DNA of 64,000 nt from Oculina patagonica (taxonomy: Eukaryota). Shown piece after piece: positions 9,201 through 46,821 of this stretch. Position 1 is the first letter of the stretch, and each line of letters opens with the position of its first letter. Position numbers and translations under genes: made by a program. The stretch is taken from positions 17,608,001 to 17,672,000 of the forward strand of contig NC_135759.1 of the NCBI RefSeq assembly GCF_052425735.1, in the 5' to 3' direction. The notes beneath the pieces were generated by a model, which did no database searches, was not told the DNA's origin, and saw only the letters and a program-made list of their open reading frames with translations.

Positions 9201-12200
9201 ATGGCGTAAACACGGTAAGTGAATTTACTTTTAATTTACAAATTTAGAACGAGACAAAGAAGGCAATTTTTTAGAATTAACAAATTTAGAACGAGTAAAA
9301 GAAGACAATATCTCGCACTAACAAATCAAAAGTGTCATCGTAACGACCTCTGTACATACAAATTTCTTCGTTCTTTGGAGTCCACGGTCATAAATGTGTT
9401 TAAAGTTTATCTTGTAAATCCTTATTCTTTGCAGATAACTACTAGACATTTAGTATTTTGTAGCAACTCTGAGTTTTAACTTTCCAACTTGGCTTAAAAA
9501 CAAACGAGCTCAGTTTGCGTGAATGATGTAGAATTTACGCAGACCGATTGTTTACTCGAAAATCAAAGCGAAACAAGCAAACCAAAAAAATCAAAATAAA
9601 CAAAACAAAAAGAGCGAATCGGGTAGCAGTTAGCTGCAAAACACGACCGCCTTTAAACAGTCAGACCCGCCTTATGCACTTGACATTTGACTCAATGAGA
9701 GTAATGGATAAAAATACCGGTTTTATGATTTCACCCGTAAACACCGACACATATAGTGAGAGAAAACATATTACAAGTCAGTTATCAGAAAGGAAAGAAA
9801 GCGCTTGTGAACGCTCTAACAGAAAATGACTCTGCACAGTATTTTTCTGAAATGTATTGTGCTTATTTCTTGTACCTGTCATTTGGGCCAAGTTCTTGTG
9901 TATTCGCTACCAGCAGGTAAGACTGAATATTTAATACTGTTGCTATTCTCGCGAGGAAAACATCATTTTCCCCGTGGTAGATTTCATATGAAAATATTTT
10001 ATTGTTCCTGACTAACATATTATAGTTCCAGTCGAATCTGTGAGAGTTTGGTGTGGTTAATCAACACCAAACTAACTCTGTTGATGTTTCTTTCAATACA
10101 ACAACAGGTGGCCAGTTTAGCTGACTACAGAACTGGAGCTAATTTTAGTCGACATTGAATTTCCTTCGTCCAAACCCCTGTTAGACGTTTTTTTTTTAAG
10201 GTGCCTGAAATTCTAAAATGCAATAACAGTGAAAATTTCTTTAAGACCTGTTCATGGGTAAGCAAATCGCAAATGTTTCCATGTCGGTTCAGATCTCCGT
10301 TTAAGAGATAAAACGTTTTGAAATTTGATCGAATTGGTAACGGTCCGAGCCACTTTAAAAACAATATCAACTGTCACAAAAGCCAATCCGAGCCATGGAA
10401 TCAAGTTAAGAGTTTGATTCTTTGAAAATGGGAACCACGAAAGGTTTTTAAAATACAAATCGAGTTTGAAAGTACATTAATACATTAAATATCACAAAAT
10501 TATTGCAACTGAGCTTCTTAACTAAGAAATGGAATCCAAGAAAGAAATTCTGCCTTTGAAAAACATAATTTGCGTCCGCTCGATGTTTGTTCTGACAGTA
10601 CAGCAATTAATCTGCAACAAAGTAATTTTTATTCCCTCCCCAATCTTGTTTATGAGTAATTAGTATTTTACCGGTATTTTTTCTAGTATTTTTAGCCTTG
10701 CTTCAATCTAAAAATAATTTAACTTTTTAACTTAATACTGTCTCTGAGACTTCACCTCTTATAATAAAACCGTACTGAAAAATGTTAGACAAGTTTCACT
10801 AAAGGTTGACGATTTTACGTTTTGGGCAATTTGACTACCTTTCTTCTGACATAAAAAAGAATTAAAATATGTCAGTCCGGAGTTTGTTTTCCTGGGTTAC
10901 CATGCGTTCCAGGCTCTTCTGTTATAAATTATGACACGTACATGAAGGTGGAATACTCTTTTCTTCGTAATAAGCCATTTTCGAGTTACCCTTTGCTTCC
11001 GTTTCAAAACTAGTTACATACGAATCCAAAACGAGTTACATACGAATCCATGCGTTTCCCCTATATGTCCATTTTCATGCAAATCAAACTCATTTTCATT
11101 TGAATGGTTTCGCAGGTAGACTCGTTTTGAAACAGAGGCAAAGGGTAACTCGGAAATAACCTATTATGCCCAAAACATTTCTTCTACGAACGGGAAAAGC
11201 TTCTATCCTATTACAATTTACTTCAGTTTAACTGCCATTTCCTTCTTAGGATCGTGTGGTGTGAGACCAGAGTGGGCTGAGCAGGCATCTGACAAGAGGA
11301 TCACTGGGGGACACGAAGCTAAACCCGGTAGCTGGCCTTGGATGACGAACATTTTTGTAACGGGGCTAGGAGAGTACTTCAAATGTGGGGCTGCTCTGAT
11401 ATCGGACCGCTGGGTCCTCACAGCGGCTCACTGTACGATCGCCAACGTTGGGCCAATAATGGCACCCGCCAGTAAATATCCAGAAGTGTTAAGGGTAATT
11501 TGCGTTCCATGTCAGTTTAACATAACATCGTTTAACTAGCTTATCATAGTGAAATTAAACCGCTTAATGCGGTCAGATGATTGTACGAAATAGGCCCTTT
11601 CCACGGACCGGACACCAAATAAAACATATACAAAATATGTGGTATAGCACAACGAAGACACTTGTTTAGAAGATTCATCACGTGCAACGGCGGTCGACGG
11701 TCAACATTCGCGGGTAACAGCGCACCCTCTGACGACATAGATTTTGCAATGTTGTCCGCTCAGAGACTTTTGGCGGGAAACAGTTTTATTGTTAAGATGT
11801 CATGTGACCTCGAAGTAGCCAATAAGAGCGCGCGCTGTTGGGGAAAACTTCAGCTATATAACAACAACCATGGTGCACTGCAAACGAATGCAACAGACAG
11901 TCAGCAGTCAAAACAAAGTAGCTCGCACCAGTCAGTCTTGATTTCCTTCATTTTGGTCTTGTCGCTTTCCTGACTCTTTTTTATAAATCAACCAAGCAGG
12001 ACAGTGGTTGATTTTGTAAAGACATATGACCATGTTCGAGTCATGGGTCAATTCCCTGGACATTTTTGTGTCCAAGAAGTGATAAACATTCATATTCTTC
12101 CTACAATAGATTGCGTTTGCCAAGCAAAAAAAATGAGAATAAAGAAAACAATCAAAAAGGGGATATTGTCTTAATGAACCAACCAATTATTATTACTAAC

Positions 12201-31383: not shown

Positions 31384-34300
31384 TCAGGGCATAAACTTTG
31401 TCGACACACTATCGGACACTTCCTTCCTTGCATTCCAAAAAAAGAGATTCCCATAAAATATTTCAAGCAATCTATTTTTCTAGGAATTAAAAATGAGAAT
31501 TGTTCAGAATGTCACTTGGTTTGTTGCTTAAATTACTAACACAGTTATCTTAATTTTGTTTTGCGTTGAATTGAACTCGTGATTGAATGTAATTCTATTT
31601 TCTTCTCTTTCTCTCTCTGTGTTCTACGTAAAGTTCCTCCTTACTACCTTCTTACTTATTTAACTCACGTACCCATCCATTTACTTCCGAGTTACCTACC
31701 TTCCGCGTTCCTGCCTTCATATCTCTATGACGTTTACTCTTAAAAATATTTAACGATTAGAATCCGTGTTGTTAGCTTCAACTTACATTATCCTGAAAGC
31801 GAAAAAAGAGGAAGAAAAATGCACTGCATTTCATCCCTAAAACTGCCCTTCTCCCTTTCCCAATCTAATATCTTTTATCTTCTGTATATTGTGGCAGCTC
31901 TCAGATCCATATTTATGGAATTGTTTTACTTCTGGTTCCATTTCTCTGTTAATCTCTCTCTTTTATTTTATTCGTCTGTTGTTCAAGGTTTCTGATCGGG
32001 TTTGTTAGTGTATACATAGCAACTGTTGGTCGATTAATTTTACATTATTTGCATGCTCCTGTTTAAATTACTTACCAGGAGCTTTAAATATTATTCTCTC
32101 GCTTCATTTCGAAATGAAAACGATTTAAGTATTAAATCATCTCAGCACCTTTACGTCTCGTACTCAAAATTTTTGAAAATTAGCTTGTCATGTTTCATTG
32201 TCCATGGTGATTAACGGTATAGTGTATAAAAATACAGTTTTAAAATTTGTTAAATGCAAAAGTTTATTGTATTTCATTTTTTGCCACAGGCTAGGTTAAA
32301 GATTTTCTCTATCCTAAAGAAGATGCGAGGATTAAGTACTGTAATCGGCATATTGACCACAGCCATTAGAATTGGTACCCTAAATATCATTAACCGAATT
32401 TTAGAAAGCACCCTTAAACGACTGACGCAGGTTAATAGCTTGTTAACTTGATCGTAGGACATTTCTGTTTAATTAATCATTCAAAATTGGCGACTCACTG
32501 TTTGACTCTGCATGAATCTTCTAATTAAACAACACCTAATCAACCAACAAATTCATAGTTATTTATCTGACCAACACATTAACGTATCAACTGACTAAAT
32601 TACCTGACGGACTGACTGACTGACGGTATTTATGATTTATTTTCTCTATAATTCTTTATTTCTTTACTACTTTTAGATTTTGTATGAATGACGAAAAATA
32701 AAAGAGTTAATACACGTCCATTACTAACAAGAAAGGAAGGGGTCGACTTGCTTCACTTTCACTGTTTTTAAACCTTGACCGATAGAATCATTCCTTGAAT
32801 GGCCAACCAATCAACCAAATTAACTCAACCAGAAAACTAAACAAAAAAAAACGAACCTGAACAACCANNNNNNNNNNNNNNNNNNNNNNNNNNNNNNNNN
32901 NNNNNNNNNNNNNNNNNNNNNNNNNNNNNNNNNNNNNNNNNNNNNNNNNNNNNNNNNNNNNNNNNNNNNNNNNNNNNNNNNNNNNNNNNNNNNNNNNNNN
33001 NNNNNNNNNNNNNNNATCAATCGATACAACTATTAACCAATCGATGAATCATTCAACCAAACAACCAAGCACCCACCCACCCAACACCAAAAAGGAACTA
33101 ACCAAACAATCAGCCAATCAAGCAACCAACCAACGAACAAACCAAACAATCAACCAAGCAACCAACCAACCAATCAACCAAACCAACCGACCAACCAACC
33201 GACCAATCAACCCACCAACCAACGAACCAAGCNNNNNNNNNNNNNNNNNNNNNNNNNNNNNNNNNNNNNNNNNNNNNNNNNNNNNNNNNNNNNNNNNNNN
33301 NNNNNNNNNNNNNNNNNNNNNNNNNNNNNNNNNNNNNNNNNNNNNNNNNNNNNNNNNNNNNNNNNNNNNNNNNNNNNNNNNNNNNNNNNNNNNNNNNNNN
33401 NNNNNNNNNNCCTAAAGAGGTCCATCCAACCAACCTACCAACCAATCAACCAAGTACACACCTAATCATCTCACCAACCAACCAAGCACACATCCAATCA
33501 GCCAACCAACCAACTAATCATACACCCAATCTTCCATCCATCCAACCAACCGACCAACCAATCAACCAAGTACACACTTAATCATCCAACCAACCAACCA
33601 AGCACACACCCAATCAGCCAACCAACTAACTAATCACACACCCAATCAGCCAACCAACCAACTAACCAACCAACCAACCAATCAAGAACACACAATCAGT
33701 CACCAACCAGCCAACCAGTCAGCCAATCACACACCCAATCAGCCAACCAACCAATCAATCAACCAAGTACACACCCAATCATCAATCCATCCATCCAACC
33801 AACCAATCAATCAACCAATCACACACCCAATAATCCATCCATCCATTCAACCAACCAAGCACACACCCAATCTTCCATCCATCCATCCATCCATCCATAC
33901 ATCCATCCAACCAACAAAACAATCAAACAACCAACCAATCAATCAACCAAGTACACACCCAATCATCAGTCCATCCATCCAACCAACCAATCAATCAACC
34001 AATCACACACCCAATCATCCATCCATCCATCCAACCAGCAAACCAACCATCCAACCAACCAATCAATCAACCAAGTACACACCCAATCAGTCAACCAGGC
34101 AGCNNNNNNNNNNNNNNNNNNNNNNNNNNNNNNNNNNNNNNNNNNNNNNNNNNNNNNNNNNNNNNNNNNNNNNNNNNNNNNNNNNNNNNNNNNNNNNNNN
34201 NNNNNNNNNNNNNNNNNNNNNNNNNNNNNNNNNNNNNNNNNNNNNNNNNNNAACCAATCACACACCCAATAATCCATCCATTCAACCAACCAACCAACCA

Positions 34301-36813
34301 ACCAACCAATCACACATCCAATCATCCAACCGGCCAGCCAACCAGTCAGCCAATCACACACCCAATCAGCCATCCAAGCAACCAACCAAGCACTCACTCG
34401 ATCATCCAACCAACCAACCAACCAACCAAATAACCAAGCAACCAATCAATCAAACAAGCAAGATAGTACACAGCTACTTAAAGAACGGACTATCTGACTG
34501 ACTTACCACCACAGTCAGACAGACAGACAAAAAGACAGACAGTAGACTACTACTACTTAACTAACTGACAGTTAAGAGAAGAACAGACTTACTGACTGAA
34601 TGACTGACTGATTTACTATATCACAGACTTTCCAGCTCATTTACAACAACTCAGGTAAGTTATATTTTAAAATACCTCTGCATAACTTAATTTCTCTCTA
34701 CAAAGCTGAACTTACCTATTGTGCTTGTCTATAAACTTAAATACTATCATAATTTAAAAATATAAACCTTAAAGTTCCTTCCTTCTTTCTGATTACCTTA
34801 TTCCCTTTCCTTACTAGCTATTGCTTACTTGCTTGCTTACTTACTTACTGACTGACTGGCTTACTTACTTACTTAGTTAATAAACTATAACTTGTTAACT
34901 AGCCTATTCAATGACCTACTTATCTTAGACTTATAATAAGACAATTCAGTTCTACTTTTGACAAAAAAGCAGAGTTAGCCAACAAGTATTTTGCCATCGT
35001 TGGTCCTCCAGTTTAGCAAGATATTTCTCACCTCAAGACTTTTTCTTCAGGTCTTTCACTGTTCGTAAAATCTATTAAATTAAATTGAAGTTTTGTAGCC
35101 TGCAGGATGAACTGTTTTCGCATTTTGAGCTAATTCGTTTTTAGAGAAAATTAGAAGGAAAAAAGAAGCAAATCTTTCTTGGCCAAGGTCGTGTTCGGTT
35201 CAGTTGGTGGCACAACAATCTTTTTTCATGGAACAAACAGTTAGTAACAGAAAGCCTAAATCGAAATTACATAATTGTCATCATACACCTACAAAAAAGT
35301 TTGAATGTATACTTAACTGCCACCGTTTTGATCTTTAGCATTGCTTCTTTCTTGAAAAAGAGATCTAACAGTTTCTCACAATTTTCTGAATCGAAAGATC
35401 AAATCGCTCCCAAACAGCACAACGATTTCGGTATACTAGGAAGAGCAGGCAAAATATGAGTGGTTAGTAGTTCCGCGTATGCATCCGGTCGGCATCTTAA
35501 GTACAGTTACTTAATGGAGCGTTCATTCTAGGAAAAGTGTCGTTGTGTTTACGCATGCGCATGCTCATGGCATTTCCACGCGTATTGCAAACAAGAAACG
35601 GTCAAACCATTGAAACTACTTTTTTAAACTGTTTAAAACACGTATTTCATAATTTGAAATAGTTAAGAACGATAATAACGTATAGTTAGGAATCCAAAAA
35701 TAAGTAATGCTTGCATTGACGAAATGTGAAGCAGTGCGTGAATTCTTGGAAAGTCGTATGCATCATTGCTTGCTTTCAAATTTTTAAGATTTCTTAGCAG
35801 GTTAATGTGCTCGAGATCTTTCTTTTAACATTTTTGTTTGTATACATACGGAAACTATATTATATTGGTTAGGAAATGAGTAGATTCTTGTTGAAAACTT
35901 AAAAAATTGCTAATCTATCGGATACAATGGCGAGGTTACTTTTCGTTTACAGCTGTCAGCTATTTTAGTAGTTTCAAGTTACCAGCCACTGACATTGATT
36001 CCTTGTCATATTTAAAATCTAAATTAAATATAAAATTATCCGAATAATTAGAGTTTATAGAGTTCTACGATTCCCTCTATAGAAGAGAAAATGTAAAGGA
36101 ATTAAATTTGCAATTAACAACCTTTTCCAAATTAAATTCACTGCGTTTTACAGTAATGTGCCTTGGTTTGCGTTCTTATCCTGAACTCACTGCGAATCAC
36201 GATCAGTGTTACAACAAGTCTACTAGATAACAAATAAACTAAGGAGGGTAAAATTAAGTAAACTTCAAAATATCGTAATCTAAATTACGAGAATAGGTTA
36301 CATAATTACAACACGAAAAACAAATTTTCGAATCCATCAAAGGCCATTGCAGAAGGCGACACCAATTAAAAGCGTTTCGGGTAACTTGTTTCGTAATTTT
36401 GTGGCGAGAAAAGTTGCACTGGAAACTGTGACATTGTCGCACTGACAGCTAAGCACTGGTACGTCTTGCAAGAGTTTTGTTGGCTGCAGTTAGCGTTGCA
36501 CAATTTTTTTGTTCCACCGACTTTTACGACAGTTGTAATGCTTCAGCGTTGTGCAATGTTATATTTTTGGTTCTAAGTAACTTAAAGAGCCCGCCAGTAT
36601 GTTACCGGACAAGTTACAGGAAGCACTACCTTAGTGGTAACGTACTATCAATGAACCTTAACTGCGGTTTGGGCAAGTCCCTTTCTCCGATTTAAGAGGG
36701 ATTATAGCTCATGGTTAAGAAACAATAGGTGTGGTTCCCCTCTACTAAAAAGTGAAATCCGGTTATTGCTTACCTTGGAAGATGAACATGAAAAGGGACA
36801 CGAATCTTGCCAT
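31384..36813 (-). pseudogene. Possible decayed multi-exon gene for a secreted protein (candidate paralog of the cytokine-like gene)
   Basis: Exon 36774-36813 reads aaaacATG MARFVSLFMFIFQ g|gtaag (phase 1). Exon-like segments near 35310-35435, 35032-35099, 32270-32464 and 32076-32148 contain stops or frameshifts. Terminal exon 31384-31479 reads KNRLLEIFYGNLFFWNARKEVSDSVSTKFMP* and is followed by AATAAA. No intact spliced ORF could be assembled. Confidence 0.3.
32800..34460. repeat. Compound (CCAA)n/(CCAT)n microsatellite with higher-order caatcacacacccaatca units; three N gaps
   Basis: Directly visible; followed by (GACT)n/(CTTA)n degenerate runs to about 34880. Confidence 0.95.
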
Positions 36814-39530: not shown

Positions 39531-39538
39531 TATAAAAG
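39531..39538 (+). promoter_or_regulatory. TATA box of the cytokine-like gene
   Basis: tataaaag 118 bp upstream of caaccATG (39649), which is followed 10 nt later by a consensus gtaagt donor. Confidence 0.65.
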
Positions 39539-39648: not shown

Positions 39649-42600
39649 ATGATTTTGGGTAAGTGAAGCAAGTTTCAGTTTAAATGATGCCACCATCGAT
39701 GAAGAGATCGAAGGCTTAGGCCATTAGTCACCAAGATGGCTGTATACTAGCTCCATTTCGTAAACGCAGACTTTTAAGGACACTACAGACTATATCATAT
39801 TTGTTAACGGGGTTTGTAGCACCTTTCAACCGAGGGAAAGCAGTATTTTAGAATCTGACCGTTACATATCTTTTGATGTCAGTTGAAAGCTTGGAATTTT
39901 CAAGTTGTTTTAACCATTCTTGTCATTTCTGGTTTATTATAACCTTTTGATGTTTCGACCTGAACTGTTATTTCGACGTTTCCTTCAATTTGAAGAAAAT
40001 CATGTCAGTCCTTGAAGCAATTACATCTTATCTTTAGTCCGAATTTTGATTCAACATGGTGGCTATGCACCTTCAATGAATTTTCTTCTCAGAAGAACAA
40101 TTCTTTTAACCTTGTTAACAGGGGTTGCCTTAAAAATGTTGCCAAATGCTCTATAAAGGAAAATGAACGCAGCCAAACTAAAAATGTTGTCTAAGTAGCA
40201 CAGCACTGTGAACGCGCGTAATCAGATGCATCGTGGTAAATGTCTTTGTCATCCTCTGCAAAACGACACAGTTAAAGGGACTGTGCCATGTCTGATATAA
40301 GTCCGTTACTAAATTTGGCCAAATATACTCGCTATAAAACTTAATGTTAGCAAGGAAACTACTTCAATACATCTAAATGACAAAACCATCCGTACCTTCT
40401 TTCGTATTTGCTGTGTTATTGAAATGTTCTTTCTAAGTTTTAAGTGGTTACTTTCATATTTCACCCAATTTGGTTGCCATTTTCCAATGCCTAAATTTGG
40501 CTTAAGTCGGTGACACAGTTCCTTTAAATGAACTGAAATTCTTTTTTATTTAATTAAGGGAAACTTAGGCCACGAAATTACATTTTCCATCAAAGAAATG
40601 TCATTTTAGCCACAGTTTTGTGCTAGCGAGAGACAAATTCAATGATAATGCGAAATGTTTAACCAAAATATGAATTGGAAATTGTTCGCAGCCAGCGTTT
40701 AGTCATTAATTGCTCTTCCAGAAATTCATGACAATTAAAACACAACCTAACGGAATTTATCCAGACGACCGTGAGAGAACGTTAAGAAAGAAAAAGTGAA
40801 CACAGTAAATATATATAAAGCTCTTTCGAGAGAGGTTGTCGAAAAGAAGCATTAGAGCGTACGCCATAATGGCGAAAGGTGTGATGGGTAAAAATAGAAA
40901 ACGGCAGCACGCACTGAATCGAACGTTTCCTTCTTATTTTAAGCTTGTGGGGGCAAACTGGCTTTAGCCAGATAAGTTTTGGAATTAATGTCTAAAGCAT
41001 GAAAGCGAATGCAAATGTAAAACTATATTAAATATCTACACAACCATTCGTCAAGTTAGCTTAAATTAAATATAACGCTTCTATCCGACAGCACTTCTTT
41101 GATTATCCTGCCATCTCGTTGAAAAACCGTGAAAATTCGGAATTGTCGCTGTTGCGCTTCTGGAGGACAACCGTTCTTAAAATGACTGTATATAAAACAC
41201 TTATCAGTTGAAACATAGACAGATTGTTACACAATGTAGTTAACCACGAAGTTACAAATCGAAGGCGATTACAAGTTAAATTTTGTCAAAGTCAAGCTTG
41301 TAGAAGTCTCGATCAAATGGTGTTCGTACAACTCGACTGATTTATTTAAGATCGTTGACAATTATTAGCTCTAAAATTACTGACTTACTTTAATTAACAT
41401 GACTCCTTTTGAAACAAAAAGAATGAGTCAATTTTCCAGTTGAGTTGATTTTCACACACTTGAGAGAACTCGCGTTCAATGTGTTTGGAAAATGTCTTGG
41501 TGCGTTGACTGAATTCGTTCTCAATTCCTATCATTTTAATGACAAACCCACCCGATCTGCTGACGTAAAAAATCTAAAAGTCTTGCACTTTCTACCGCTG
41601 GTTTGAAATACCCCCCTTACTTGCCCTAGGCGTTTAGTTCATGTCACAGTTACATATTTAGTAATAACTAGAATTCTAAAATGTGTGTAAAATAGAAGTA
41701 TTTTAGCATAATTATAAAACATGCATATTTAAAAATAGAACTACTAACGAAGTTCATAATATGGTAAGCAGAAGTTTTTGTGATATAATTCAAGCCAGGA
41801 CCATGAAAATGAGAATCGTGTAAAATTTGTAACTTTAAGGGTAAAAAAAGCTTCACGTTCACACGAGATCATCGCTTAAAAAGCGTTCTTTGCAAATTAA
41901 ACACACGGTCACGAACTATTTTTAGTCCAAAGACTGAATAATAATTTAATAACGTTGAAGTTGCTATTTTAGTGCATAAAATGAAAATGATCTAGGAATC
42001 AAACTATTCTGTATTGTATGTGGTCGTTCTTTTCATTTTCATGACGTCACCACGAATTTAACAAAACTGATTTTGAACCAACCGATTAGATTTGGGAACG
42101 ACCCAAACAGAACTTATGCACAAGACAGCTTATCTTTCATTCTTTATTTACTAAATCGTGTCAACTCCTTCCAAAATGTAGGTCTTCCTAAATTTTTTTC
42201 CAATTTGGCTGTTTTTCTTTCAAAAAATGATGTAACACACCAAAATTATTTTTTTCCGTTTCGTACATGTAACATTTTTTAAACCGGGTGTACAGTCAAA
42301 ATGCTATATCGATAACGAAACTTGGTATGGTAATATCTAAACACCGGAAAATATTTACTGTTTTAATAGCTCTTCTCATTTTGTTATTTTCTTTCCCTTT
42401 AGGAAAAGCATTTCTCGTATGGGCAACTTTGTTTGTCATGGGTTTAGCCTTCAGTGATGGGAGTGAGGTGCCCAATGACCCAGTGTTTGATTGTCTTAAG
42501 ACATTCACACTTCAAGCACTTCAGTGCTATGTAAGTACTTAGTTTTGGTGTTACTTATTCTAGAGAGCGATTTTCACTTGAGTGTCGAAAGTAACTTGCG

Positions 42601-45600
42601 TTTGCTTTGGTTTTGCGTTGATTAGTTAAAAGATAATCGCGCGACTTTCTTAACCAATCAGAAGTAAAACCAAAACCAATCTTGATTCGCTCGTACGCGT
42701 TTTCCTGCGCTTCATGCCGGTTACTTGGTATTTGCTTCGAGTTTTGATTCGTTCACTGGATTGTCTGTGTCCTTTGTGATCGGCCAGAGTGATTGCTATG
42801 GTTTTGGTCGAACGAGATATTATCGAAAACCGCTCTAACAACAGTTTTCAAAGGGTTACAGAAGAGCTTTTGTGCAGCGTGAGCTAATAATAATAATAAT
42901 AATAATTTATACATTTATATAGCGCTAAAAACTATAAATATTCTAAAGCGCTGTTTACTATATGTAAAAATAATATAAAAATATAAAAATTAGAATGAAC
43001 CTACATACAAATCAAACTAGAAACAGTGTGATTGAAAAGTTAAAACGCTTAAACGCGAAATGCTTTCTTAAAAAGGAAAGTCTTCAATTGACTTTTAAAA
43101 GTCTCCACTGATGACGCTTTGCGAATGTCAACAGGAAGCTCATTCCACAGGGAGGGGCCTGCCTTGGCAAAGGCTCTATCCCCAAAAGTTTTCAGCATTG
43201 TCTTAGGGACAACTAGCATATCATGGCCATCGGAACGCAGGTTGTACCGACCAACAGGCTTGGCCTTCAAAAGGCCAGAGATGTAAGGAGGAGCTTTCGC
43301 ATGAAGGGCCTTGTACACCAGTAGCAGTATCTTAAACGTCACCCGGTACCGAACAGGAAGCTAATAGGAGTATACATAGGAAAGTAGTCTAAAAGGGCTT
43401 TGGTCAAGTTATATAAATTAAGATTTTTGCCACCTGGTTTATTTGAATTTAATAACGAGCTCCAAAGTTTTTTAAAAGATGGTTTTTGCCAAGATATATC
43501 TTTAATTCAGGGGAATATTATTAGACCAATCAGTCAGTACACACTTGGCCTTTAAAACTTACATTGAAAATTTTACTTTCTGACGCATGATATTACTTAA
43601 CACATCTTCAGGAAACTTTGCCATTAAGTGTAAAAGGAATGAACACTTACAACAACAACAAAAACAACAACAACAACAACCGTTTTCATACTTCAGTATC
43701 ATCACCATTCTAGAGATATCTGTTGTTTGAAATAAACTTTTTACCGCAGAGAATACGTTACTTTTCATAATTTGGTTTTGGCGTTCTTCCTTGTTTTTGT
43801 GACCGCACAAACCTGGAAAGGGAGCGAGCGTGCTGTTTGGTGACGTCACCGTTGACGATAGAGCCAGACTCCCTTGAGACGAAGACGCCTAGGGGCTAAG
43901 ACTAGTTTCAATACTGATTTTAAAAGTAGCTAATGATGTTGTTTTTAATTTTTTTGCATTGATTCCAACTAAAAATCTAATAGAAATAATTGAAACAACA
44001 ATGTTTCTGTGACACTGATACTTCAACACATATCATCATTATCATAACCATGAACAATTTATTGTTTGTTATTGTTATAGAGTGGTTATCACTTGAGTGT
44101 CGAAAGTAATTTGCGTTTGCTTTGGTTGTGCATCACTACGCTTAGTGATTGGTTTAAAAATCTCGCGCTATCTTCTTAGCCAATCAGAAGTAAAACCAAA
44201 ACCAATCGTGACTCGCTTGTGCACGTTTTCCCGCGCTTCGTGCCTGCGACATGTATTTGCTTCGAGTTTTGATTGGCTGGCTAGATTGTCTGTGTCCTTT
44301 GTGATTGGCCAGAGCAATTACTTTGGTTTTGGTTTTACTACACTCAATTGAAAACTGCTCTATTTAACTCAATAATAATTGACGAAATTTTTTTTTCCTA
44401 TACAGAAAACCGCAAATCATATCAAGAATTCTCACCGAGGCGGGGCACTTGGAAGTGAATTAAGAAAACTTGTGCCAAACAACTACCGTACCTGGCCGAA
44501 TAAGGTAAGACAGCGACAGAACTATTATGCACTTTCACTATAAGAATGCCTTAGCTGAAATTTGAAAAAAACTCTATTTAAAAGTTACCCAAAAACCGAC
44601 GGACATGAAGGTACTGCTCAACAGCTTTGAGCCTTTGAGTGATAGGCTTAAGCTTTTAGTTTTGGTTTTGTCGAAAGTCAATACTGCTATTATAAAACAG
44701 AGCTACGATAAAAACCTTGACTGTTCGCTGTTGTGTATACTAATGAGATTTACTGCCAATATTTATCACCAGACTACTCGCCAACGTGCTCAGCAGTGCA
44801 TGACAGCCCTAAAGAACTTTGTCGAGCCACTGAAAGTTGTGGTGCAGAGCGAAAAGCGGACGAAAAATTTTTGCAGATTAACTGGACATACTTTAAACAA
44901 GACACTTCATGGCTTGCTTCGAGTTTTGGAGAACAGCATTAAAGACATCGACGAATATGTAAGTGCTTCTATATTGCTTGGTTTACCGATATTTGAAGAG
45001 AAATAAGTTTTTGATCAATCCATCAATTGACATAATAAAGTGTTCTGCATGACCAAGATACAAAACAGTCCGTCTATCTGGGCATAATCGTGAATGCGTA
45101 ATCAAAACTGAAAGAAAAAGTTATACTTCGTGTTATTTCGTGATTTCTTTATAATGAAAAGAATGCCACACTTTGGAATTATTTCCTTACTTGGGCCTTT
45201 TTTATGCATTTGAATCATATAACTATCCAACTCATTAAATCTTCCTATTGAATTAAGCCCTTTACGTGTATGCCGCAAGCTGCTAAGTAAACGGGGAATA
45301 GGAAGCTAGCTATGCTAGCTAAAAACAGTCCTTCTTTTCCCGGTTAAGAATATGAAAATTATGAAATGCATGAAAGCAGCACAGTTTCAACTGAAATATT
45401 TTACCTTCTAACTGTGCCTCTGCCTGGCTTACGTATTATCATTTCTTTATACAGGTCCGTCTTCAGCATATTAAACTGAAACCTTTGCGAGTGAAGCCCG
45501 TAAATATGACCAGCATGACAGCTCTGGCTGCTCATCAAATGGTAAGCGTTCTTTTTTTTCTAAGAATGAACAAACTGATTGAACAAACTAATGTACACAA

Positions 45601-46489
45601 AGAGAATAAAGTATGTTTTCCCGTAATTAAAAATCAACTTTCTATTTCTTCATGCAATTTAGTTTGGCATGTTTATTTAAATTGAATATAAAGAAACAAA
45701 CAATTTATTTATTAATGTCATGGCGCAGGATGAGGTTGCCCTCTCTATCCGAGCCAAAGGCTCATGTAAAAAGCGCAAGACAATAATTAAAATCGATTAT
45801 AAAAAAATGGGAACTAGTATAAGTAATAGATAATAATAATATGAAAAAAAAATAACGTGTACATCCAAAAATATATGGTAGCTCTAAGGAGAGCGAGCGC
45901 TTATTTTTTCGACACTGATAAACATGGGAAAGTGAAAAACACTGAACAACAACAACAGATACTTTAATTCAAGAACAGTAACAATTAGTGTTTGTATAGT
46001 CATAACACAATTCGTTCGTTTAATATGTTCGATATCACGTTCAGATGGGAAAGCAGACAACGCAATCCACTTGTCTGATCACTCTATTCTATGTCAATGT
46101 CTTAAATGTTGCTTTCATAATGGAGGCACTTTTTGGAAGGGGGTGCGGATTGGAATAGGGGGAGGAATAGGGGGCATGGAGGCGCTTTCTTTTTTAAAAA
46201 AGACAACACTCAAAGGAGAGCGCTAATTACAAAGGCGGCGCTTATTGGAAGGATGGCGCTAAATATAATCATTAAGTTATAAGTTGGAACGAACGCGACT
46301 GTATGTCCATTTACACTAAACATTTTCTTCGCATTTGTTTTTCAGAGTGGTCTTACCTCACGCAAAGCAGTTCAACTACGCAACTTTGTTCTGCTGGATT
46401 TCTTAGACCAAGTCGTTTATGACATAAAAACAACCGCGGGATCGTGCTTTAACACCAAAGCTAGCATTAGCTTCGTTTGCCCAGTTTAA
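39649..46489 (+). CDS. Secreted 217-aa alpha-helical protein, putative long-chain four-helix-bundle cytokine-like
   Basis: Exons 39649-39658, 42403-42530, 44406-44504, 44773-44958, 45455-45541, 46346-46489 (654 nt). All five donors are gtaag, acceptors are yag, phases 1,0,0,0,0. Translation: MILGKAFLVWATLFVMGLAFSDGSEVPNDPVFDCLKTFTLQALQCYKTANHIKNSHRGGALGSELRKLVPNNYRTWPNKTTRQRAQQCMTALKNFVEPLKVVVQSEKRTKNFCRLTGHTLNKTLHGLLRVLENSIKDIDEYVRLQHIKLKPLRVKPVNMTSMTALAAHQMSGLTSRKAVQLRNFVLLDFLDQVVYDIKTTAGSCFNTKASISFVCPV. The gene model is well supported; the fold assignment is inference. Confidence 0.85.
40276..40523. mobile_element. Kolobok-like MITE (TTAA TSD) in intron 1 of the cytokine-like gene
   Basis: ttaa|agggactgtgcca ... 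tgacacagttcct|ttaa. Confidence 0.65.
42563..42837. mobile_element. MITE, same family as 44078-44362
   Basis: agagcgattttcacttgagtgtcgaaagtaa..ccaatcagaagtaaaaccaaaaccaatc..gaaaaccgctct; two similar copies flank the LINE in intron 2. Confidence 0.75.
42890..43360 (-). mobile_element. 5'-truncated L2/CR1-group LINE 3' fragment
   Basis: Reads LPVRYRVTFKILLLVYKALH..PPYIS..YNLRS..FGDRAFAKAGPSLWNELP..FKSQLKTFLF. Has a (TTA)n tail and the direct repeat agctaata at 42882-42889 and 43359-43366. Confidence 0.9.
44078..44362. mobile_element. MITE, same family as 42563-42837
   Basis: tagagtggttatcacttgagtgt ... acactcaattgaaaactgctcta inverted termini. Confidence 0.75.
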
Positions 46490-46821
46490 ATCAACCAGCC
46501 AGTCAAAAATGTAATATTTAGATAGGAAGAGGTCATTACCATGAAATATTAGGCAAATTGCATGCTTAAATGTTTGATGCTATTTTTATCAGGACAGCTT
46601 TTAACTTGTAGAAGATTTTATCAAGGCTACCTCGGTTGTTAAAGAAATTATTACTATTCATATTGAATATAACCTGTACTGTTCTATGAGAATGCTATAG
46701 AAATTGTTAACCTATTTGGTTAAGAAACATTTATTTATCCTGAGATTGTATTTTAACAGTATTTATGCTATTTATGTAGAATGTCGAGGTCTATTGCGAA
46801 TGAAATAGTTTAAAAAATAAA
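46490..46821 (+). promoter_or_regulatory. 3' UTR with AU-rich elements and polyadenylation signal
   Basis: ATTTA at 46516, 46729, 46733 (ATTTATTTA / TTATTTAT), 46761 and 46770; AATAAA at 46816-46821. Confidence 0.6.

Follow-up and report, generated by a model that had tools for sequence, protein, structure and literature searches.

Background

In the human growth hormone (GH) gene the first coding exon is 10 nucleotides (nt) long, the intron phases are 1,0,0,0, and introns lie close to the ends of helices A and C and ahead of helix B; the structure of the IL-6 and G-CSF genes is similar. A phase-1 intron within the signal peptide is, more generally, common in secreted proteins. Class I helical cytokines are usually presented, together with their receptors and JAK, as a package that belongs to Bilateria, STAT, SOCS and SHP being older than Bilateria and JAK and the classical receptors having been added in Bilateria (PMC6797617, PMC12026705). 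Among cytokine-receptor-like molecules, CRLF3 alone has been reported from Cnidaria, and it is an orphan without a known endogenous ligand; insect CRLF3 responds to EPO, a long-chain helical cytokine (PMC6797617, PMC12026705). Class I receptors bind their ligands through a cytokine-binding homology region made of two FN3 domains with a WSXWS motif. Sequence searches are notoriously blind to the ligands of invertebrates. No description of a cnidarian helical cytokine was found in the literature searched (full text; not exhaustive). The gene considered here lies in a 64,000-nt stretch of the genome of the stony coral Oculina patagonica (NC_135759.1, positions 17,608,001 to 17,672,000 of the forward strand), hereafter the window, and its six coding exons (39649-46489) encode a secreted protein for which a helical-cytokine fold is predicted. 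All coordinates are window positions, on the plus strand unless stated.

Gene structure and identity

When the gene model is rebuilt from the window, the six exons join into a 654-nt frame with no internal stops, encoding a product of 217 amino acids (aa); the five introns, each of them GT..AG, have phases 1,0,0,0,0. Coding exon 1 (39649-39658) consists of the ATG and 7 nt (Met-Ile-Leu-G) and runs up to a phase-1 GTAAGT donor; the ortholog of Acropora muricata in RefSeq begins M-T-L-G-K, and Montipora begins M-G-K. Exon 2 (42403-42530) supplies the remaining signal peptide, the N-terminus and predicted helix A with Cys34 and Cys45, and exon 3 (44406-44504) supplies the A-B loop, with two short helices, an invariant N-S-H-x-G-G-x-L-G motif and Trp76. 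Exon 4 (44773-44958) contains predicted helix B with Cys88, the B-C loop with Cys113, and predicted helix C with an invariant sequon at Asn121. The C-D loop, including its predicted mini-helix and an invariant N-M-T sequon, is encoded by exon 5 (45455-45541), and the coding part of exon 6 (46346-46489) contains predicted helix D with an invariant L-R-N-F-V motif, the C-terminal tail, in which Cys204 and Cys215 lie, and a TAA stop codon.

The product thus has six cysteines (34, 45, 88, 113, 204, 215) and three N-x-T sequons (78, 121, 158). An earlier note on this DNA, made from the letters alone, had described the same exons, splice sites, phases, 10-nt first coding exon, cysteines and sequons, and all of these were reproduced exactly. 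The same note had called the gene hidden, which does not hold: a search of 1.84 billion representative proteins with exon 4 alone retrieved 10 homologs, and the Oculina translation is 100% identical to the deposited 'hypothetical protein ACROYT_G005785 [Oculina patagonica]' (217 aa), so that the gene was already annotated in GenBank, although uncharacterised.

The sole hydrophobic stretch of transmembrane grade is at N-terminal residues 2-20, with a 19-residue Kyte-Doolittle mean of 1.97 as against 0.81 or less elsewhere, which agrees with the signal peptide and the lack of a second transmembrane segment proposed earlier. This N-terminal hydrophobic segment is kept in the orthologs. Cleavage after Ser21, predicted by rule of thumb, would leave a mature chain of 196 aa and 22 kDa that is basic (pI 9.9).

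Predicted structure

AlphaFold2 was run on shallow alignments of 5-6 sequences, from which fragments with read-through tails were excluded. The best Oculina model, from a five-sequence alignment, has a predicted local distance difference test score (pLDDT) of 76.6 and a predicted template modelling score (pTM) of 0.76. It places helix A at residues 30-49, helix B at 81-105 with a kink at Pro98, helix C at 120-144 and helix D at 175-199, with a long A-B loop containing short helices and a long C-D loop containing a short helix at 159-169. The Montipora ortholog, which is 44% identical, gave the same helix layout with a pLDDT of 79.8 and a pTM of 0.80, and three of its five models reached a pLDDT of at least 70. 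The four amphipathic segments picked out by eye in the earlier note coincide in placement with these helices, and helices A to C are significantly amphipathic; helix D is taken up in the Discussion.

Each model was compared exhaustively with 48,161 PDB representatives using VIA-align, independently of Foldseek, and for both models none but class I/II helical cytokines appear among the best matches. The Z scores for Oculina and Montipora, respectively, are 14.5 and 14.0 with IL-11 (156 residues at a root mean square deviation (rmsd) of 3.0 Å for Oculina), 14.4 and 14.1 with CLCF1, 13.7 and 13.3 with IL-6, 13.7 and 13.7 with placental lactogen, 13.6 and 14.4 with LIF, 12.7 and 12.3 with CNTF, 12.7 and 12.2 with IL-27, 12.5 and 11.9 with OSM, and 11.8 and 11.7 with GH. 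IL-11, CLCF1, LIF and IL-6 align sequentially with both models over 144-160 residues at an rmsd of about 3 Å (Z 13.3-14.5). For Oculina the top 27 rows are all helical cytokines, and the first other fold is a ferritin at Z 7.8, covering residues 79-211 only; for Montipora the top 26 rows are all cytokines, with the first other fold at Z 7.7. Foldseek searches of PDB, Swiss-Prot, the AFDB clusters and the ESM Atlas returned lists almost wholly of prolactin, CNTF, LIF, GH, IL-11, IL-6 and cardiotrophins, with TM-scores up to 0.67. An Atlas search confined to unnamed clusters returned just weak arthropod and chordate rows. Language-model features computed from the sequence alone have as their nearest clusters LIF, cardiotrophin-2, prolactin, IL-6 and G-CSF (0.90-0.93).

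What gives the fold match its weight is that it is sequential over nearly the whole mature chain, confined to one superfamily, about 6 Z units above other bundles, and repeated with a diverged ortholog. Judged from these models, the mature chain is most likely a four-helix bundle with the long chain and the up-up-down-down topology of class I helical cytokines, and both models bear out the topology, the long A-B and C-D loops and the IL-6/LIF/GH/prolactin class that had been suggested from the sequence.

The weaker structural or language-model neighbours include uncharacterised proteins, in AFDB entries and Atlas clusters of arthropods, molluscs and cnidarians. Some of the AFDB-cluster neighbours are presumably arthropod, judging by their accessions, and A0A3M6V303 (19% identity) is taken to be from Pocillopora. 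These rows hint at further unrecognised helical-cytokine-like families in invertebrates.

Comparison with known helical cytokines

The closest likeness is to the IL-6/gp130 family (IL-11, CLCF1, LIF, IL-6, CNTF, OSM and IL-27p28), which match the predicted coral fold with Z 12-14.5 at an rmsd of about 3 Å over 135-160 residues of the whole mature chain. Like the coral protein, these cytokines are secreted, are about 20 kDa when mature, and have four helices of about 25 residues with long A-B and C-D loops; LIF and IL-11 are also basic, and IL-6 carries a mini-helix in its C-D loop, as the coral protein is predicted to do. Sequence, in contrast, separates them. Identity in the structural alignments is only 8-14%, there is no match to Pfam IL6, LIF_OSM, CNTF or IL11, the pattern of six coral cysteines differs, and the coral protein is missing the site-III F-x-x-K that LIFR ligands (LIF, CNTF, OSM, CT-1 and CLCF1) carry at the N-terminal end of helix D. 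Nor are gp130, LIFR or JAK known from the phylum of the coral.

Prolactin, placental lactogen and GH (Hormone_1) provide the top Foldseek matches in both PDB and Swiss-Prot, placental lactogen reaching Z 13.7, and they share with the coral protein two cysteines in the C-terminal tail. However, the spacing of these cysteines is 10 residues in the coral protein as against 6-7 in GH and PRL, and PF00103 is not matched. In GH and PRL the disulfides make a large loop, from the A-B loop to helix D, and a small C-terminal one; Cys204 and Cys215 of the coral protein could form a small C-terminal loop. Judged from the predicted topology, Cys45 would be expected to pair with Cys113, and Cys34 and Cys88 each with Cys204 or Cys215.

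In the coral gene, as is typical of class I cytokine genes, a phase-1 intron interrupts the signal peptide, and the later introns are of phase 0 and lie at helix boundaries. Two of these follow residues 46 and 141, close to the ends of helices A and C, and the other two follow residues 79 and 170, immediately ahead of helices B and D. The last of these introns, before helix D, is extra relative to GH and PRL. The resemblance in the first three of these intron positions and in the phases to the GH and IL-6 genes is suggestive of common descent, subject to the caveat above that phase-1 introns in signal peptides are widespread.

The Unpaired proteins of Drosophila (Upd1-3) are about twice as long as the coral protein. 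They are likewise invertebrate, secreted, basic, glycosylated ligands predicted to be helical, and BLAST gives no link between them and IL-6 (PMC8226699). Drosophila, unlike the coral as seen in an insensitive exon-wise search, has the corresponding receptor and kinase, Domeless and Hopscotch.

Several other assignments were considered and set aside. Pfam matches to DUF4635, SURF2 and Cas_APE2256 are all far below the cut-off and were treated as noise. A toxin, a pore-former or a skeletal-matrix protein finds no structural or sequence match in any list, and coral skeletal matrix proteins are absent from the Swiss-Prot structure matches. The coral sequences are filed as a cytokine-like family of unproven homology, and not as members of the IL-6, LIF or PRL families.

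Orthologs and conservation

In Desmophyllum pertusum (MU827322.1), a promoter block containing TATAAAAG, the ATG, the 10-nt coding exon, the GTAAGT donor and the signal-peptide part of exon 2 are all kept. Threading yields exons of 10, 128, 99, 186, 90 and 135 nt with phases 1,0,0,0,0, as in Oculina, and an intact 215-aa protein with a signal peptide. The N-terminus of the deposited Desmophyllum model OS493_025452 (255 aa) was rejected as a mis-model, since its ATG overlaps the conserved TATA box and an internal acceptor skips the conserved signal peptide; the mis-modelled part involves positions 10001-10183 and 13010 of the Desmophyllum locus.

Further orthologs are present in RefSeq/GenBank for two Montipora and two Acropora species, and the identified orthologs span both major clades of Scleractinia. 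The same exon series was found at four further loci, in coral or Tara metagenome assemblies from ENA. The five full-length orthologs are 42-59% identical and share 51 invariant positions, among them the six cysteines and two sequons. Conservation is strongest on three surfaces: the A-B loop (N-S-H-x-G-G-x-L-G and Trp76), the mini-helix of the C-D loop (N-M-T-x-M-T-x-L-A-A), and helix D with its L-R-N-F-V. Between Oculina and Desmophyllum, the ratio of nonsynonymous to synonymous substitution rates (dN/dS) is 0.37-0.40, which from the sequences indicates purifying selection on a fast-evolving protein.

No paralogs were found in the Oculina genome, where the only matches are the five larger exons of the gene itself. 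A profile search of 5.8 billion proteins gave matches limited to coral proteins and fragments.

Transcription and splicing

A putative TATA box, TATAAAAG, is seen at 39531-39538, about 110 nt 5' of the start codon and within the promoter/5' untranslated region (UTR) block that is kept in Desmophyllum pertusum. At the other end, a 3'UTR extends from 46490 to approximately 46840, with an AATAAA signal at 46816-46821.

The public runs that cover parts of the locus are labelled merely as guessed RNA. Contigs from two runs in two studies pass directly from 42530 to 44406 and from 44504 to 44773, each time skipping a GT..AG intron (exons 2-3 and 3-4), and a contig from one run joins 45478-45541 to 46345-46496 (exons 5-6). 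At the exon 6 acceptor, where a contig begins, there is a one-base ambiguity (46345/46346). Because the introns are skipped precisely, the contigs must come from spliced RNA. An RNA contig extends across the 3'UTR as far as 46724, and the last exon and UTR are present in seven probable RNA runs from four studies. Contig depth is only 2-3, which points to low expression in the material sampled. No RNA contig among the public runs covers the exon 1-2 and 4-5 junctions, for which the support is comparative, both the splice sites and the exon lengths being conserved in Desmophyllum; three of the five junctions proposed in the earlier note are therefore confirmed by RNA, and two lack coverage.

Intron 2 contains several repeats. 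Two direct copies (81-89% identical) of an element of about 280 nt are found at 42561-42837 and 44076-44362, and relatives of this element occur in RNA contigs of all runs at a summed depth of 10^4-10^5, with many variants and many chimeric joints. In this coral group it would seem to be a highly abundant repeat, resembling a short interspersed element (SINE) or a miniature inverted-repeat transposable element (MITE); an Rfam scan of the locus, including this element, gave no match. On the minus strand, at 43049-43342, there is an antisense open frame of 97 aa that by eye resembles the C-terminal tail of ORF2 from retrotransposons without long terminal repeats (non-LTR). RNA contigs over 42915-43361 have a depth of 40-160 and continue into unrelated sequence, so that they probably represent a transcribed repeat family and not part of the coral gene. 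An (AAC)n-type microsatellite, passed over as a repeat in read placement, is located at 43646-43690.

Receptors and the JAK-STAT pathway

The earlier note had gone on to propose that the protein may be a ligand for gp130/Domeless-like receptors and a JAK-STAT pathway. An exon-by-exon, six-frame Pfam search of the 529-Mb genome, which is an insensitive method, gave no match to JAK FERM_F1, Jak1_Phl or IL6Ra-bind. EpoR_lig-bind gave a match of 24.9 bits, below threshold and with two stops inside it. STAT_bind, the DNA-binding domain, gave a weak exon match of 25.6 bits, just below the cut-off, and STAT_alpha gave nothing in this exon-wise search. Since a search that barely sees STAT, which predates cnidarians (PMC6797617), must be insensitive, the null result for JAK and the receptors is no proof of their absence. 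The control genomes were prokaryotic and say nothing about the sensitivity of the search.

A sub-threshold lead for Lep_receptor_Ig on contig C5 was rejected, because it belongs to a multi-Ig gene, of which it is the first Ig domain, and neither an FN3 domain nor a cytokine-binding module is seen within 10 kb. The region in question (10061000-10070999) contains a signal peptide and at least five Ig-domain exons (I-set/Ig_3), and the gene may encode an Ig-domain receptor or an adhesion molecule.

Given the lack of JAK and receptor matches, together with reviews that date JAK and the classical receptors to Bilateria and so place the complete pathway there, the JAK-STAT/gp130 part of the earlier proposal was not adopted. 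CRLF3, which is a receptor and not a relative of the coral protein, is the obvious candidate partner, being the sole cytokine-receptor-like molecule reported from cnidarians, an orphan, and responsive to EPO in insects. Pairing the coral protein with CRLF3 is a pure hypothesis.

Discussion

The coral protein is probably a cytokine-like secreted ligand with a helical-cytokine fold nearest to the IL-6/gp130 group and to prolactin/placental lactogen, an interpretation that depends on modelled structures and is held with moderate confidence. As a secreted, N-glycosylated, disulfide-bonded and basic ligand, it would act on a cell-surface receptor, binding the receptor ectodomain through helix faces together with the conserved A-B loop, C-D mini-helix and helix D. 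By an inferred mapping, these conserved surfaces would correspond approximately to receptor site I and its neighbours in long-chain cytokines. The canonical JAK-STAT route is not assumed.

A number of results weigh against a cytokine-like ligand. Helix D, the fourth of the segments first picked out as amphipathic, is not significantly so in a simple test. With three family members as queries, a Pfam hmmscan to E 10 detected no cytokine family (IL6, LIF_OSM, CNTF, IL11, GCSF, Hormone_1, Leptin or EPO_TPO), and a profile search against PDB sequences gave nothing relevant, with one chance match at E 0.84. The LIFR-type site-III F-x-x-K is absent, helix D (L-R-N-F-V-x-L) having by inspection a leucine and not a lysine three residues past the phenylalanine in all five orthologs. 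On the structural side, only one of the five Oculina models is confident, the alignments behind the models are just 5-6 sequences deep, the best Foldseek E-values are weak (0.003-0.09), and, as VIA-align itself cautions, a best Z of about 14 is frequent for models that are mostly helical. Furthermore, AlphaFold and the language model are not fully independent, because both were trained on known cytokines. The exon-wise genome search produced no JAK or receptor, with the insensitivity already described. Finally, protein-database and profile searches detected the family in stony corals only, so that a pre-bilaterian origin is inferred and not shown.

Many of these points are what would be expected if the likeness to cytokines were convergent or a product of modelling bias, and the protein were secreted and helical but specific to Scleractinia, not homologous with helical cytokines and engaged in something other than signalling, for example as a matrix, carrier, antimicrobial or adhesive protein. 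The missing sequence and profile link to cytokines, the restriction to stony corals, the shallow alignments with four of five Oculina models at low confidence, and the middling-to-high Z scores that helical bundles commonly receive are all consistent with that explanation. Yet the 44%-identical ortholog gives the same fold with better confidence, and the match is sequential over about 150-160 of 165-178 residues with both long crossover loops included, in a comparison where cytokines stand about 6 Z units above every other bundle. The language-model neighbours are also cytokines, no coral skeletal matrix protein is among the Swiss-Prot structure matches, and low expression, a basic chain and N-glycosylation are more in keeping with a signalling ligand than with a structural protein made in abundance. 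Convergence or bias is rather unlikely. It is far harder to credit that the locus is an annotation artefact or a decaying pseudogene without a functional product, an explanation that is by now refuted in large part. The very low expression (contig depth 2-3), the two junctions without RNA support and the differing N-terminus of the Desmophyllum database model could be read in that way, but three junctions are confirmed by spliced contigs, Desmophyllum has an intact frame with identical exon structure, the exon series recurs at four more loci, and 51 residues including the six cysteines are invariant across five species, with a dN/dS of 0.38. The locus is a functional, single-copy, weakly expressed gene of Oculina patagonica, and its model, its splicing, its conservation, the purifying selection on it and the secretion signal of its product are shown by the data.

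It is improbable that the protein is the ligand of a cnidarian class I receptor of the gp130/Domeless type that activates JAK-STAT, with canonical signalling predating Bilateria. The predicted fold is indeed nearest to the gp130-family cytokines, the gene phases are 1,0,0,0,0, and the genome does contain a weak, sub-threshold exon match to the STAT DNA-binding domain. Against this, none of FERM_F1, Jak1_Phl, IL6Ra-bind, EpoR_lig-bind and Lep_receptor_Ig exceeds the cut-off (in a search so insensitive that STAT_alpha is null too), the sole Ig lead belongs to a generic gene with multiple Ig domains, neither an F-x-x-K nor a Trp hot-spot motif can be made out, and JAK and the classical receptors are considered bilaterian additions (PMC6797617, PMC12026705). 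A broader evolutionary claim is that the coral family is a true, extremely diverged homolog of the class I cytokines, that the ligand side was present in the cnidarian-bilaterian ancestor, and that the protein acts via CRLF3 or an undescribed FN3 receptor. This is possible, if doubtful, since the family has been detected in stony corals alone and the searches identified no receptor for it.

Other features of the window

An open frame at 4316-5083 matches the rhodopsin-family G-protein-coupled receptors (7tm_1, E 2e-12), and another at 13228-13683 matches an exon of a trypsin-like serine protease (E 6e-19), and neither frame shows an evident link to the cytokine-like gene. The region 32001-36000 contains three runs of N (32868-33015, 33233-33410 and 34104-34251) and has strongly negative GC skews of -0.51 and -0.22 and low GC content, which probably reflect a repeat or satellite with strand bias where the assembly has gaps.

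Implications

The Oculina gene provides a concrete molecule for asking whether the ligand fold predates the receptor/JAK machinery. It raises the question of what such a ligand binds in an animal that is said to lack this machinery, and of whether the orphan CRLF3 has a ligand of this kind; if the pairing with CRLF3 were true, the coral protein would be the first endogenous ligand candidate for that receptor. Should the likeness prove convergent, it would serve as a useful warning on the fold-based annotation of helical bundles. As a cytokine-like ligand, the protein would be a new handle on cell-cell signalling in corals, including immunity, wound repair and symbiosis.

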